Shown here piece by piece: positions 5,759 through 11,800 of a stretch of DNA of 64,000 nucleotides (position 1 is the stretch's first letter; every line of letters starts with the position of its first letter). Made by a program: the position numbers and the translations under genes. Below the pieces are notes generated by a model. It was not told where the DNA came from and ran no database searches. It saw only the letters and a list, made by a program, of their open reading frames with translations. The stretch covers positions 682,001 through 746,000 of the forward strand of contig NIVC01000251.1 in the NCBI GenBank assembly GCA_002269645.1, in the 5' to 3' direction. The stretch comes from Macrostomum lignano. Its lineage: Eukaryota.

Positions 5759-5887
5759 ATGATGGAGCAAGCAGGTTCGGCCATAGACAGCTGGTTGGAC
5801 GCCGCTTACGCCGGTGACTTGAGTCGCTTGCGCGACCTGCATCAGAGCGGGCTTGTGCAGCTGGAGTCGAGGGCGGATTTCGACAAG
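5759..5887 (+). CDS. TRPM exon 1 (start; ankyrin repeat 1)
   Basis: ATGATG start; [43 protein letters not shown]; donor gtcagc, phase 0. Confidence 0.7.
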
Positions 5888-8800
5888 GTCAGCTTTTTTA
5901 CCGCGGGTACTTTTGTAGAGTTGCTCTTGTCATGTACAGGACATGTACTGGACTAGACTGGACATGCAAATTGCTGAGATGTCAATCAAGGTTTATAGAG
6001 GGAATTGCTGAGACGTCAAGGCTCACGGGGGGAATTGCTGAGATGTCAAGGCTTATTGGTGGAATTGCTGAGATGTCAAGGCTTATTGGTGGAATTGCTG
6101 AGATGTCAAGGCTTATTGGTGGAATTGCTGAGATGTCAAGGCTTATTGGTGGAATTGCTGAGATGTCAAGGCTTATTGGTGGAATTGCTGAGATGTCAAG
6201 GCTTATTGGTGGAATTGCTGAGATGTCAAGGCTTATTGGTGGAATTGCTGAGATGTCAAGGCTCATGGGTGGAATTGCTGAGATGTCAAGGCTCATGGGT
6301 GGAATTGCTGAGATGTCAAGGCTCATGGGTGGAATTGCTGAGATGTCAAGGCTCATGGGTGGAATTGCTGAGATGTCAAGGCTCATGGGTGGAATTGCTG
6401 AGATGTCAAGGCTCATGGGTGGAATTGCTGAGATGTCAAGGCTCACGGGATGAATTGCTGAGATTTTAAGGCTTATAAGGGGTGAATTGCTGAGATTTTA
6501 AGGCTTATAAGGGGGGAATTGCTGAGATTTCAAGGCTTATTGGGAGAATTGTTGAGATGCCAAGGCTCACGGGGGAGAATCGCTGAGATGCCAAGATTTT
6601 AGGGAGGATCGCTGAGATGTGAAGGCTGAGGTCAGAAGCTACATTTACTGTAGTTTATTCAAAAATTGTATTTTATTCTTTAGTTGGCCCCCAACGGAGC
6701 CAACTCAAAAATGGCCACTCAAGGACTACTAGACTAGACTAGACTATATAACGAAGTGTTCCTAGTGGTCCTTGTGGCCACTATCTTCACGAATAATCCC
6801 TTACCTAACAAGAAACAGGAAAAACAGTTTCTACAAAATCCTGCCATGATTTATTTCCACGATATAAAAAGGCCGAGATGAAGTCGGTCACGGCGCTGCT
6901 GCTGGCCGCGGCGGCCGATCGGTACCACTGCACTCGGTGGCTGCTGTCCACCGGCGCCGATCGCAAAGCTGCTCTGCCAGACGGTCGGACTGCGCTGCAC
7001 TTGGCCTGTCAGTTCGGCTGCCCTCTGGTCACGGCCGCACTGCTGGAGGCCGGCTGCGATGTTGACGCCACGGACTCGGTCAGTGACATGCTGAGGATGG
7101 TCGGCTGCTCAATTGCTGAGTGCCAAGTGCTGTAAAACGGGTTGCCAAGCTGAGCCCAAAGAAGGGCTCTGCCACAGGGATATTGTAGGGCGATACTATA
7201 CCAGGGGCTTAAGCCCGAGATGCCAGTACGGGGACTTCCCCAAGCTAAAGACTGCACAACCCAAACCTATGGGATCACCGCCAACCCAACAGTGGAATCA
7301 GGAGGACGTGTGCAAAGACCCAGACCATCCACCAACGACAAAACCCGAGTGTGATTTGGAACTTTTTTGGATAGCAAGTTCGAGAGTGGGACCCCAGCTA
7401 GGCTTCATATTGGAGCGAGTCTGGGCAGCTTATTTACCAGGGGCGAGTCTCCTGTCAGGTAGGCCTCCAGGATAAAACCAGCTCCTATAGGGCTGCTAGA
7501 GACAAGGCCCTTTCACTACCCAGCTCTAAAAAGCCCAAGCCAAGGGGTTGGAGAAGGAGCAAAGGGCTCAGCCGGTTGTGTAACATTGTTATCGATTGAA
7601 ATAGTCGTGCTTGATTAATATCAACTAAAACATTTACAGCATTTACAGTTACTTAGAGTAGGCTGTTCAGAGTATAAACTTGCTATATAACGGAGTTAAT
7701 ATATAGCCTGTCTATTGTCCTTGCCAGGCTGGTCGGCAACCGCTGCAACTGGCCGCTTCTCCCGAGTGCATTCTCCTGCTACTGAAGGCTGGTGCTTCAA
7801 TTCAGCCTGCTCACGTACGGCCCTGTTGAACTGAGAAGCTGTGCTTGCAAGCATAAATCATAAATCATTACTCTCTTATATCGGAGAGAGCGGCAGTTTT
7901 GATTCGTTTGAAATGTTACAATTTTTTAGCAATAAAATGCAACTCTCCGTAGCAGTGCCAATTCCGCAAGATTAAGCATTAACCACGCCATGTAAGCAAT
8001 TATTTATATTAGCTGTTGTGTTTTTTTCAGGCCTCACACCAGGAGAAAAGCAAAGAGTCACTGAGCGGTCAAGGCAATAGTGGATTGCTTGATCGTTTCA
8101 AAAATGTAAGTTTATTTTTTCTCTGCTAGGTTGATTTACAAGCTTATCAATTTGTGATTGTGAGAGCCGTGTGCGGTTAACGATAATTTGGGGTTCTTCG
8201 CACAAAAGATTGGTGGAGGGGTACGTTTAGGTTTAGGGTTAAAGTGTAGATTTTGGGTAGGGTTTTGGTCTTGGGTAGGGCTTAGTTTTGGGTAGGGTTT
8301 AAGTTTAGGCTAGGTTTTAAGTTTAGGTTTATTTTATGGCTTAGGTTTAGGTTATGGTTAAGGTTTAGGTTTACGTTTAGGTTAAGGCTTAGGTGTAGGT
8401 TAGGGTTTAGACATAAACATTAGACATTTAGACATTAGGAATTAGGTTTCAACCAGTTTTAGTTAAAGGTTAAAGTTTAAGTTTAGGTTAGGGTTCAGGT
8501 TTAGGTTAAGAATTAGGTTTAAGCTAGGGTTTGTATTTATGATTATGGTTTAGGTTTTGGTTTAGGTTTTTGGTTTAGTCATAGAGAACGGTTTAGGTTC
8601 AGGATTAGGGTTTTGGTAGGGTTGGTTAAGGTCGGCAGTCTAATGTCGTAGACTCACTGTCAAAGCAAAAGTATCTGTTCAAGCGTTTTAAAAAACTGCA
8701 TTATTGAAAAAACTGCATTTCTACCAACTTCCACACCGTGTAAATTTATATCGTCAAACTTCTTGAGTTGAGTCACTGTGAGTCGCCTCCAGCTAGGCAC

Positions 8801-11800
8801 AATATAGTAAAACGCCTTGGTATTGGCAGTGACAGTATAAACAGTTAAAATGGGCGGCCACCCAGATCAAGGAAGCTAACTGTGCTGTTATGTCCTGGAG
8901 GCGCCACTGTCGCTTAAAATGTAGGAGTAGCCTGTCTCATAGTCCCGAACCCCAACCTCTGGGCAATAGCAGTTTGCTACAGAACCCTCCAGCCTTAAAC
9001 AGCTGGAGTAGGAATTAATCCTGCACCCACACCCTCCACCCTTGCAAGTTTATTATTGGTTGTCAAGGCCAAGCAGTCACCGATGGCTGACCCTACCAGA
9101 GACGCAATAAACGCCCTGTAGTGTCAGAGGCAGTTTACTGTCCACTATATCGCTAATCTGCTAAACTAAACTAGTAGTTGCTGCGAAGAAGAAAAGTCAG
9201 CCTTTTTTACAGTCGAAGTTGCCTGTTAGAAGGTGTCTGTTGCTAAAGAGACAATATTTATACATTTTCATCTCGTGTTTGTACCATCTTTGGCAGGATC
9301 GGGAGCATTCTTGGTATCCTTTGAACTTGAGTCGCAGGCAGTGTGTGCAATTCAGTCCATCGAGGTGAGAACTACCATATTCTCAGATTGAACTACCATG
9401 TGTTCTCAGATTTAACTACCATATTCTCAGATTGAACTACCATATTCTCATATTGAACTACCATGTGTTCTCAGATTGAACTGCCATGTGTTCTCAGATT
9501 GAACTACCATGTGTTCTCAGATTGAACTACCATGTGTTCTCAGATTGAACTGCCATGTGTTCTCAGATTGAACTACCATGTGTTCTCAGATTGAACTACC
9601 ATGTGTTCTCAGATTGAACTACCATGTGTTCTCAGATTGAACTGCCATGTGTTCTCAGATTGAACTGCCATGTGTTCTCAGATTGAACTGCCATGTGTTC
9701 TCAGATTGAACTACCATGTGTTCTCAGATTGAACTACCATGTGTTCTCAGATTGAACTGCCATGTGTTCTCAGATTGAACTGCCATGTGTTCTCAGATTG
9801 AACTGCCATGTGTTCTCAGATTGAACTACCATGTGTTCTCAGATTGAACTGCCATGTGTTCTCAGATTGAACTACCATGTTCTCAGATTGAACTGCCATG
9901 TGTTCTCAGATTGAACTGCCATGTGTTCTCAGATTGAACTACCATGTGTTCTCAGATTGAACTACCATGTTCTCAGATTGAACTGCCATGTGTTCTCAGA
10001 TTGAACTGCCATGTGTTCTCAGATTGAACTGCCATGTGTTCTCAGATTGAACTGCCATGTGTTCTCAGATTGAACTACCATGTGTTCTCAGATTGAACTA
10101 CCATGTGTTCTCAGATTGAACTACCATATTCTCAGATTGAACTGCCATGTGTTCTCAGATTGAACTACCATGTTCTCAGATTGAACTGCCATGTGTTCTC
10201 AGATTGAACTACCATGTGTTCTCAGATTGAACTACCATGTGTTCTCAGATTGAACTACCATGTGTTCTCAGATTGAACTACCATGTGTTCTCAGATTGAA
10301 CTACCATGTGTTCTCAGATTGAACTACCATGTGTTCTCAGATTGAACTACCATGTGTTCTCAGATTGAACTACCATGTGTTCTCAGATTGAACTACCATG
10401 TGTTCTCAGATTGAACTACCATGTGTTCTCAGATTAAACTACCATGTGTTCTCAGATTGAACTACCATGTGTTCTCAGATTGAACTACCATGTGTTCTCA
10501 GATTGAACTACCATGTGTTCTCAGATTGAACTACCATGTGTTCTCAGATTGAACTACCATGTGTTCTCAGATTGAACTACCATGTGTTCTCAGATTGAAC
10601 TACCATGTGTTCTCAGATTGAACTACCATGTGTTCTCAGATTGAACTACCATGTGCTCTCAGATTGAACTACCATGTGCTCTCAGATTGAACTACAATGT
10701 GTTCTCAGATTGAACTACCATGTGTTCTCAGATTGAACTACCATGTGCTCTCAGATTGAACTACCATGTGTTCTCAGATTGAACTACCATGTGTTCTCAG
10801 ATTGAACTACCATGTGTTCTCAGATTGAACTACCATGTTCTCCAGGCGAACTCTTTAATCTGAGCTTTAACTCCAGCAACCTGCTCCCCCCCCCTCAGGT
10901 CTGACCCCGTAGTCTGCGCCTGCGGCGGCACCGCCGAAGGTCATCCAAGCGATATGCTTCCATCGGACAATGATTCCGGCGGATTCGGTGGCAGCATCAG
11001 GCGAAAGTTCTCACTGAAGCCACAGCAACAGCAGCAGCAGCAGCAGCAGCAAAAGCAAGATGTTCCAGCAAATGAATCAGACTACTTGGCTGAGGCTCTG
11101 CCGACCAATGCTTTCGGTGAAATCGAATTCTCCGGAATGAAACAGTTGGCTAAGGTTCGTTCGGTTCAATTCGTGATGCTTATTTGGCTCGATTCCAAGT
11201 GCAGTCGCATTAATTTTGGGGCTAAATTGGAATCTCGGTTTGCATGGCTCTGCTTGTGCAATTAATTGTCTTGAGGACCAACCCCCAAGGCACAGTGAAG
11301 TGTACATGCTTAACGATAAATAAAAAGTTAGGGCCGCTGATCACTCCTGTGTGAGTGTGTGCCTGCTCAGGGGAGTCGGCAAAATGGGCAGTAATGCCTC
11401 TCGCCGGTTGTGTCACAATGTCGCTTAAAGTGCACCAGGGTGCACACAGCCTCCTGGCTCTAATTAGAATGAGACATCAATAAATTGATGAATTTCAGTT
11501 CGTCCGACTCGACTCCAACACACCCGAGGAGGCGCTTCACGAGCTGCTGGTCAAGAAGTGGGAGATGAGTCGGCCAACCCTGGTCATCAACATTTTTGGC
11601 GGCGACTTTGAGAAGAAGAGACAGTTGAAAATGATATTTAAGAAGGGACTGTGGAAAGCGGCGGAGAGCGCTGGTGAGAGAGTTAATGATTTGCATTCTG
11701 TGCTGTTTTGTAGTTTAGCAGAAATTGGCGATTTATAGATACTATGAAAAGTTGTTGCAAAAAACTGAATTCAAAGTAATCAGCCTCCCACATCCTCGGT

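Follow-up and report, generated by a model that had tools for sequence, protein, structure and literature searches.

Ankyrin-repeat exons upstream of a TRPM2-like channel gene in the flatworm Macrostomum lignano and their likely in-frame fusion

Can a channel of the TRPM family carry canonical ankyrin repeats at its N-terminus? The question is raised by a locus of the flatworm Macrostomum lignano (assembly GCA_002269645.1, contig NIVC01000251.1, forward strand), of which a stretch of 64,000 nucleotides (nt), positions 682,001 to 746,000, was analysed; it is called here the window and is numbered from its first letter. Near its 5' end, three exons encoding ankyrin repeats precede the exons of a TRPM2-like channel, and an earlier note on this DNA proposed that both parts form one polypeptide of the order Ank-MHR-channel-NUDT9H. 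The TRPM family has been described as a TRP family without ankyrin repeats, and the ancestor of TRPM and TRPS has been reconstructed as ankyrin-free (PMC7306681). Our analysis suggests that the locus most likely yields, as its main product or at least as an isoform, a single fused polypeptide; we put the probability of this at about 0.58. An in-frame path through GT-AG introns and precedents among other flatworm TRPMs speak for this proposal; on the other side, the fusion is not forced by the sequence, and trans-splicing of a spliced leader (SL) offers an alternative beginning for the channel mRNA.

The ankyrin module itself was well recognised by profiles. The N-terminus obtained by splicing of exons 1-3 (Table 1) matched Pfam Ank_2 with E=2.3e-23 at residues 52-138, plus a second stretch, and Ank with E=1e-13 at residues 80-111, which belong to the exon of repeats 2 and 3; the profiles Ank_3, Ank_4 and Ank_5 scored above or close to the Pfam cut-offs. 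The count of four repeats proposed for these exons was thus a fair one, with three canonical repeats and one degenerate N-terminal capping repeat. A single-sequence AlphaFold model of the first 204 amino acids (aa) reached a predicted local distance difference test (pLDDT) of 49, which is too poor to inform on the ankyrin fold. Upstream of position 5759 the same frame stays open for 91 more codons, with one earlier in-frame ATG. A likeness ('RELQL') between this upstream frame and the N-terminus of the M. lignano paralogue Mlig003066, described below, was considered and rejected as not significant.

From the ankyrin exons, a continuous path leads into the channel. All borders of exons 1-7, including that at 11499-11673, are of the AG/GT type, the limits proposed earlier proved to be exact exon ends, and the exons form one open frame once spliced. 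This open frame exists only in the spliced product. The introns had been described as stop-free and in phase 0; phase 0 held for the junctions from exon 1 to exon 5, whereas the junction of exons 5 and 6 is in phase 2, and read-through past every donor meets an in-frame stop after 1-36 codons. At the exon 3 donor, for example, read-through gives VRPC and a stop four codons on (TGA at 7827-7829). Furthermore, the ankyrin exons do not lead to 9297 directly, the linker exon 8031-8105 being placed between them. No sequence homologue of the exon 4 linker was found; its positional counterpart is an 87-nt basic linker exon of the paralogue Mlig001812. That the exon at 9297 has no start codon of its own was borne out, as the 44 open codons upstream of it hold no ATG; the linker exon at 8031 is likewise without ATG, and no ATG-first exon with a GT[AG]AG phase-0 donor was found between 7830 and 9296.

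The remainder of the gene was traced with M. lignano homologues as a guide and extends, from 5759 to 43973, over more than 30 exons; in a low-complexity stretch at ~19-25 kb the exon-by-exon model is not settled. Pfam LSDAT_euk (E=4.6e-48 at aa 273-529) and LSDAT_prok (E=1e-17) pointed to the presence of SLOG/MHR1-2, and PF25508 to MHR3/4 ahead of S1 (E=7e-21 for its N-terminal and E=6e-30 for its C-terminal part). The six-transmembrane core was matched by Ion_trans (E=1.2e-11), with a predicted TRP helix after S6 in exon 33043-33470; the best matches and profiles of the core were all TRPM, which sets it apart from TRPA, TRPN, TRPV and TRPC. The identification as a TRPM2-type channel with a NUDT9H domain was confirmed by the C-terminal 270 aa, which match human NUDT9 (1q33, E=3e-31) and NUDT9H of Nematostella TRPM2 (6co7, E=9e-30). 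The Nudix box, in exon 37796-37945, is degenerate where NUDT9 has LKREFGEEA, so that NUDT9H probably binds a ligand instead of hydrolysing ADP-ribose.

The solved TRPM2 structures of Nematostella, choanoflagellate, zebrafish and human (6co7, 8sr7, 6drj, 6mix) share with the window the order of SLOG/MHR, channel, coiled coil and NUDT9H, and the C-terminus of the window matches solved TRPM2 structures with E=1e-15 to 1e-30; canonical N-terminal ankyrin repeats are present in none of the four. Among flatworms, TRPM_PZQ of Schistosoma mansoni and its 'nudix-subclade' paralogues are TRPMs with NUDT9H, as in the window, and the window gene is best explained as a paralogue of these flatworm 'nudix-clade' TRPM2-like channels. 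A cytosolic N-terminal ankyrin domain before a core of six transmembrane segments is known from TRPA, TRPN, TRPV and TRPC and is found in the window model as well, but there the repeats run straight into pre-S1, while in the window a full SLOG/MHR1-4 region lies between.

The survey of flatworm TRPM N-termini that had been suggested as a check revealed precedents of the Ank-SLOG-channel-NUDT9H layout. With the TRPM part as query, an exhaustive HMMER search recovered 2142 relatives, of which the best 150 representatives were screened for Ank before SLOG; within these 150, Ank ahead of SLOG occurred in exactly two clusters, both of flatworms. One is Mlig003066 of M. lignano, in three copies (BOX15_Mlig003066g1-g3; PAA85706.1, PAA49471.1 and PAA76106.1), uncharacterised predictions which, like the window model, possess four N-terminal ankyrin repeats, SLOG, the TRPM2 domain, Ion_trans and a NUDT9H-like C-terminus. 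The other comprises Clonorchis sinensis KAG5447154.1 and Opisthorchis viverrini XP_009171463.1, predictions annotated as 'TRP cation channel subfamily M member 2'. In word-indexed protein searches, neither the fused N-terminus nor the TRPM part nor an alignment of four Ank-TRPM sequences retrieved a protein with both Ank and SLOG; the matches were of at most ~980 aa, which left full-length channels out of reach, and were mostly generic ankyrin proteins. Related parasite sequences (P0146-P0149 and P0177) were found to be without N-terminal ankyrin. Two further leads were rejected: the M. lignano sequence P0128, labelled 'ANK_REP_REGION' in UniProt, is a fragment that begins within MHR3, so that the label must refer to the ankyrin-like MHR4 region; and the N-terminal extensions of 200-450 aa in TRPM2-like proteins of molluscs, brachiopods and hemichordates are of low complexity and not ankyrin.

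For the three M. lignano paralogues, the loci are denoted L001 (Mlig032314), L002 (Mlig003066) and L003 (Mlig001812). Exon 3 of Mlig003066 (L002 11771-12022) holds the last ankyrin repeat, the linker and 'FGEVEFPGLGNTAQ' in one uninterrupted exon, so that in the same genome an Ank-TRPM fusion exists that needs no splice. Its exon 2 (L002 10952-11158) is identical to exon 2 of the window in length (207 nt), phase (0/0), content (two repeats) and end (GACTCG/GT). In the best BLASTP register the two introns fall at the same residue, an intron after '...AQ' or '...AK', ahead of 'F.R', stands at the same place, and the 3' border of window exon 6 coincides with the end of Mlig003066 exon 3 (...GLGNTAQ). 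The two genes differ in that the channel parts are only 36-39% identical, Mlig003066 belonging to the other flatworm subclade; in that Mlig003066 has a single exon from the last repeat to the TRPM start, where the window has three introns; and in the W..C..C.C..H motif, which is degenerate in Mlig003066. The fluke proteins follow the order of the window model, with Ank, a basic linker of ~30 aa, 'WIPYNL..C...C.C...H', SLOG, channel and NUDT9H; they differ from it by ~30% identity, probably five repeats, and genes of ~125 kb. An older, independent partial model from Clonorchis (GAA41411.2) also shows the last repeat continuing into the TRPM motif.

By exon structure, the predicted ankyrin module of the window corresponds to that of the Mlig003066/Clonorchis/Opisthorchis TRPM lineage. 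We take this to mean that four ankyrin repeats have long been associated with flatworm TRPM2-like genes; the window gene would have retained them, and its nearest paralogues would have lost them. The same observations would also be accounted for by an ancestral operon that underwent fusion in the other clade.

In this copy, the exon 3 donor would be joined to the acceptor at 8031 (or 9297), and the product would contain, in this order, four ankyrin repeats, a disordered Ser/Lys linker of ~25 aa, a Cys/His pre-MHR motif and SLOG/MHR1-4, then S1-S6 with the TRP helix, the coiled coil, and NUDT9H with its degenerate Nudix box. The acceptors at 8031 and 9297 may also receive the SL, whose in-frame AUG would give an isoform without ankyrin. 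Solved TRPM2 structures place the N-terminus of MHR1/2 beside NUDT9H, at the edge of the bottom cytosolic layer. For this reason a regulatory or docking role is the natural first hypothesis: the module would form a docking or regulatory surface at this edge. A mechanical, thermal or scaffolding role is speculative.

Table 1. Features of the TRPM2-like gene in the window; a slash within a sequence marks an exon border or, for the frameshift, the site of the missing base
Feature	Position	Strand	Remarks
Exon 1	5759-5887	+	ATG and degenerate capping first ankyrin repeat; ends in phase 0; donor AAG/GTCAGC
Minisatellite, 30-bp unit, 21 copies	5986-6627		fills intron 1
Exon 2	6872-7078	+	ankyrin repeats 2 and 3; 207 nt; phase 0/0; end GACTCG/GT
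Exon 3	7728-7814	+	ankyrin repeat 4; weak donor CAC/GTACGG
TGA	7827-7829	+	in frame if the exon 3 donor is unused; would close a free ankyrin protein of 145 aa
AATAAA	7931-7936	+	~100 nt past TGA 7827-7829, ~95 nt ahead of the 8031 acceptor
Exon 4	8031-8105	+	25-codon Ser/Lys-rich linker; phase 0/0; acceptor TTTTTTTCAG/; donor AAT/GTAAGT
Exon 5	9297-9364	+	TRPM pre-MHR motif; 68 nt; phase 0 to 2; without ATG
Minisatellite, 23-bp unit, 64 copies	9369-10838		fills intron 5
Exon 6	10899-11154	+	C-x-C...H motif, polyglutamine
Exons 7-14, SLOG/MHR1-2 and MHR3	11499-16780	+	LSDAT_euk and TRPM2 domain profiles
Exons 7-10	11499-11673, 13422-13588, 14299-14631, 15466-15593	+	
Exons 11-14	15842-16017, 16083-16198, 16479-16628, 16727-16780	+	
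Exon 15	18808-18967	+	
Poorly conserved low-complexity exons	~20.9-21.0, 22.3-22.4, 23.3-24.9, 25.10-25.21 kb	+	borders provisional
MHR4/pre-S1, S1-S6, pore, TRP helix	25830-33470	+	TRPM2 and Ion_trans profiles
Exons of MHR4 to TRP helix	25830-26353, 28512-28623, 30307-30435, 32024-32551, 33043-33470	+	
-1 frameshift, S5 Gly codon (FILG/YGVAAQ)	32371-32374	+	base absent in comparison with all paralogues
Coiled coil, acidic/Ala-rich spacer, NUDT9H	34263-43973	+	TAA at 43971-43973
Exons of coiled coil to NUDT9H	34263-35213, 35655-35740, 36550-36841, 37796-37945, 39675-39788, 43848-43973	+	

The nearest paralogues of the window gene differ at their 5' ends. The closest sequence is BOX15_Mlig032314g1, with 73-75% identity, and Mlig001812 is likewise a member of the TRPM2-like clade; in both, the exon borders of the window and the acceptor position of the W-motif exon are conserved. 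This exon occupies 9566-9634 in L001, with a TAG just upstream, and 10844-10911 in L003, where it measures 68 nt as in the window. In Mlig001812, a 19-codon non-ankyrin exon with ATG is followed by the 87-nt basic linker exon (L003 10655-10741), the two being joined in cis. In L001, an A/T-rich tract with an in-frame TAG (9440-9570) precedes the W-motif exon of Mlig032314, and a coding exon upstream of it was not detectable. As this acceptor has a TAG upstream and no ankyrin exons are present, an SL-like start is probable for Mlig032314, whose start codon may thus come from the SL. It should be added that a 24-nt micro-exon (GRDKxxxQ) is common to L001 (11918-11941) and L003 (14005-14028), between the equivalents of window exons 7 and 8; it was omitted in other models of Mlig032314 and Mlig001812, and a counterpart was not found in intron 7 of the window.

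In M. lignano the SL has the sequence CGGTCTCTTACTGCGAAGACTCAATTTATTGCATG, ~30% of genes are trans-spliced and ~15% reside in operons, with a modal spacing of ~100 bp and [T/C]TNCAG as the top trans-acceptor motif (PMC8629364). The terminal ATG of the Macrostomum SL has been taken as a start codon (PMC10468722); SLs end in ATG in all flatworms, and acceptors are extensively common to cis- and trans-splicing (PMC12582326). The fusion had been deduced from the missing start codon at 9297, and this deduction is not compelling, since the Macrostomum SL ends in ATG and, because exons 4 and 5 start in phase 0, this ATG is in frame at 8031 and 9297 alike. The locus could accordingly comprise two cistrons of one transcription unit, either as an operon or after fission of an ancestral fusion, a serious rival reading, though the less likely one. 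Exons 1-3 would then give a free four-repeat protein of 145 aa, terminated by TGA 7827-7829 and polyadenylated after the AATAAA at 7931, and the channel mRNA would be made by SL addition at 8031 or 9297 and start from the SL AUG (at 9297, M-DREHSW...), with joint action of both products still conceivable. The frequency of SL trans-splicing and operons in this species agrees with it, as do the distances between TGA, AATAAA and TTTCAG/, the weak exon 3 donor, and L001, which keeps the acceptor with the in-frame TAG just upstream and has no ankyrin exons. The exon 4 acceptor, TTTCAG/GCC at 8031, fits the [T/C]TNCAG motif and is in phase 0; that of exon 5, TGGCAG/ at 9297, does not fit, though still in phase 0. 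However, an AATAAA is expected by chance ~0.17 times per 216-nt interval, so that one such hexamer is not unlikely, and an ordinary intron of 216 nt is compatible with the same signals. Moreover, the ankyrin exon structure is the same as in the bona fide fused paralogue Mlig003066, and in the annotated model of Mlig001812 the linker exon is cis-spliced to an ATG exon that lies upstream.

Donor strength was assessed with a position weight matrix (PWM) built from 58 introns of the three M. lignano TRPM paralogues, with leave-one-out scoring. An objection that the exon 3 donor was disqualifying had come from a PWM of the gene's own junctions and was dropped, as with the independent 58-intron PWM this donor is weak but within range. 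It outscores the donors of exons 8 and 13, both of which are required by homology; being weak, yet above two obligatory donors, it leaves the question of fusion undecided on the side of splice signals.

Taken together, several observations count against the fused polypeptide. The exon 3 donor (CAC/GTACGG) reaches 3.2 bits, the 5th percentile of the 58 true TRPM donors; the order of TGA 7827, AATAAA 7931 and a [T/C]TNCAG acceptor at 8031 is operon-like; and SL addition at either candidate acceptor would place the ATG in frame. Ankyrin exons are absent within 9.5-10 kb upstream of Mlig032314 (L001) and Mlig001812 (L003), and the ankyrin module of the window resembles the TRPM-linked ones only in a generic way (24-40 bits). 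In a neighbour-joining tree of 1097 columns, rough and without support values, the window grouped with Mlig001812, A0A1I8HSQ2 and parasite TRPM_PZQ-like sequences; the annotated members of this clade have no ankyrin, and in the same rough tree it is sister to the Ank-bearing clade. Finally, the copy may be non-functional in view of a frameshift in S5.

This frameshift is the basis of another explanation. Relative to Mlig001812 and every protein homologue, one base is lost at ~32372, which interrupts the channel frame. A 19-nt or 44-nt 'intron' across the site was ruled out, as conserved S5 residues would be removed with it. The lesion is either an assembly error or the mark of a young pseudogene; in the latter case the gene would be a decaying duplicate with no working channel, whatever its 5' end, which we hold to be quite unlikely. 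The missing base does lie in a conserved Gly codon, and M. lignano is a hidden polyploid rich in gene copies, with high BUSCO duplication (PMC10468722). Against decay, it is the sole disruption across more than 5 kb of coding sequence, and the other exons backed by homology have open frames and share 60-85% identity with the paralogues. Long-read assemblies often carry single-base indel errors, from which this one may stem.

An unrelated ankyrin gene, situated upstream on the same strand and in matching frame by chance, is very unlikely in our view. Ankyrin genes are abundant, and phase-0 exons holding one or two repeats each are common among them; the module is also no closer to TRPM-linked modules than to bacterial ankyrin proteins. 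To set against this, four repeats stand directly 5' of a TRPM gene in a phylum that has TRPM fusions with four to five repeats, the two-repeat exon has a length, phases and end identical to those of Mlig003066, and there is no other candidate first exon for the channel at 7830-9296.

A mixed outcome is conceivable as well, but we consider it rather unlikely: the fusion may be switchable, the weak exon 3 donor being cis-spliced to give an Ank-TRPM2-like channel, or else yielding the ankyrin protein and a channel without ankyrin as separate products. The second route would proceed by polyadenylation at ~7950 and SL addition at 8031 or 9297, with the SL AUG as start. If true, the locus would stand, as a living intermediate, between an operon and a fusion (or fission) of genes; Mlig003066 and the flukes would represent the fused end-state, and Mlig032314 the one without ankyrin.

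Returning to the fused polypeptide as the favoured product, the Ank-SLOG-channel-NUDT9H layout exists in public predictions and is new to the TRP literature, where it is essentially undescribed. The figure legend of a 2024 review on schistosome TRPMs names an 'ankyrin repeat domain' among the annotated domains of paralogues (PMC11731825); in its text, ankyrin-like modules are discussed for the SLOG-less TRPM_MCLZ only, and Ank upstream of SLOG is not discussed. The window gene is probably a further Ank-TRPM member, from another subclade. Canonical repeats precede SLOG in no fewer than two flatworm lineages, and probably in three if this copy is counted; these constitute exceptions to the TRPM rule and identify ankyrin as an added module in relatives of the praziquantel target family. 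Transgenesis is feasible in Macrostomum, and its ankyrin-bearing and ankyrin-less paralogues, side by side in one genome, provide a natural comparison by which ADP-ribose/Ca2+ gating, localisation and partner binding could be addressed. The locus also advises caution with gene models in trans-splicing animals: a first conserved exon without ATG is no proof of fusion, because the SL can supply the AUG.

Some further features of the window should be mentioned. Among proteins, TRPM-like predictions from M. lignano match it best, and interspersed and tandem repeats are common to the window and three M. lignano loci with 95-100% identity; one array, at 50629-50799, is 96-100% identical to an array in L002. 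The introns of the window are filled with minisatellites, and arrays were listed at 1-2401, 3736-5265, 5986-6627, 9369-10838, 11781-12442, 12825-13280, 13644-14166 and 14899-15354. Transposase remnants are present in the TRPM introns, namely a Mos1/mariner HTH_48 fragment at 19589-19969 (minus strand, E=2e-9) and a DDE_3 fragment at 41665-42057 (plus strand, E=1e-5, below the Pfam cut-off). A single-exon gene for a rhodopsin-type G-protein-coupled receptor of 568 aa (48329-50035, plus strand; 7tm_1 E=2e-18, Srw-type E=8e-17), for which an exact-sequence look-up gave no record, begins ~4.4 kb past the stop codon of the TRPM gene. On the minus strand, at 60439-63187, lie three large open frames with WD40 repeats (E=2e-18), a coiled coil and a weakly matched TRAF-type zinc finger, a combination suggestive of a TRAF7-like gene.

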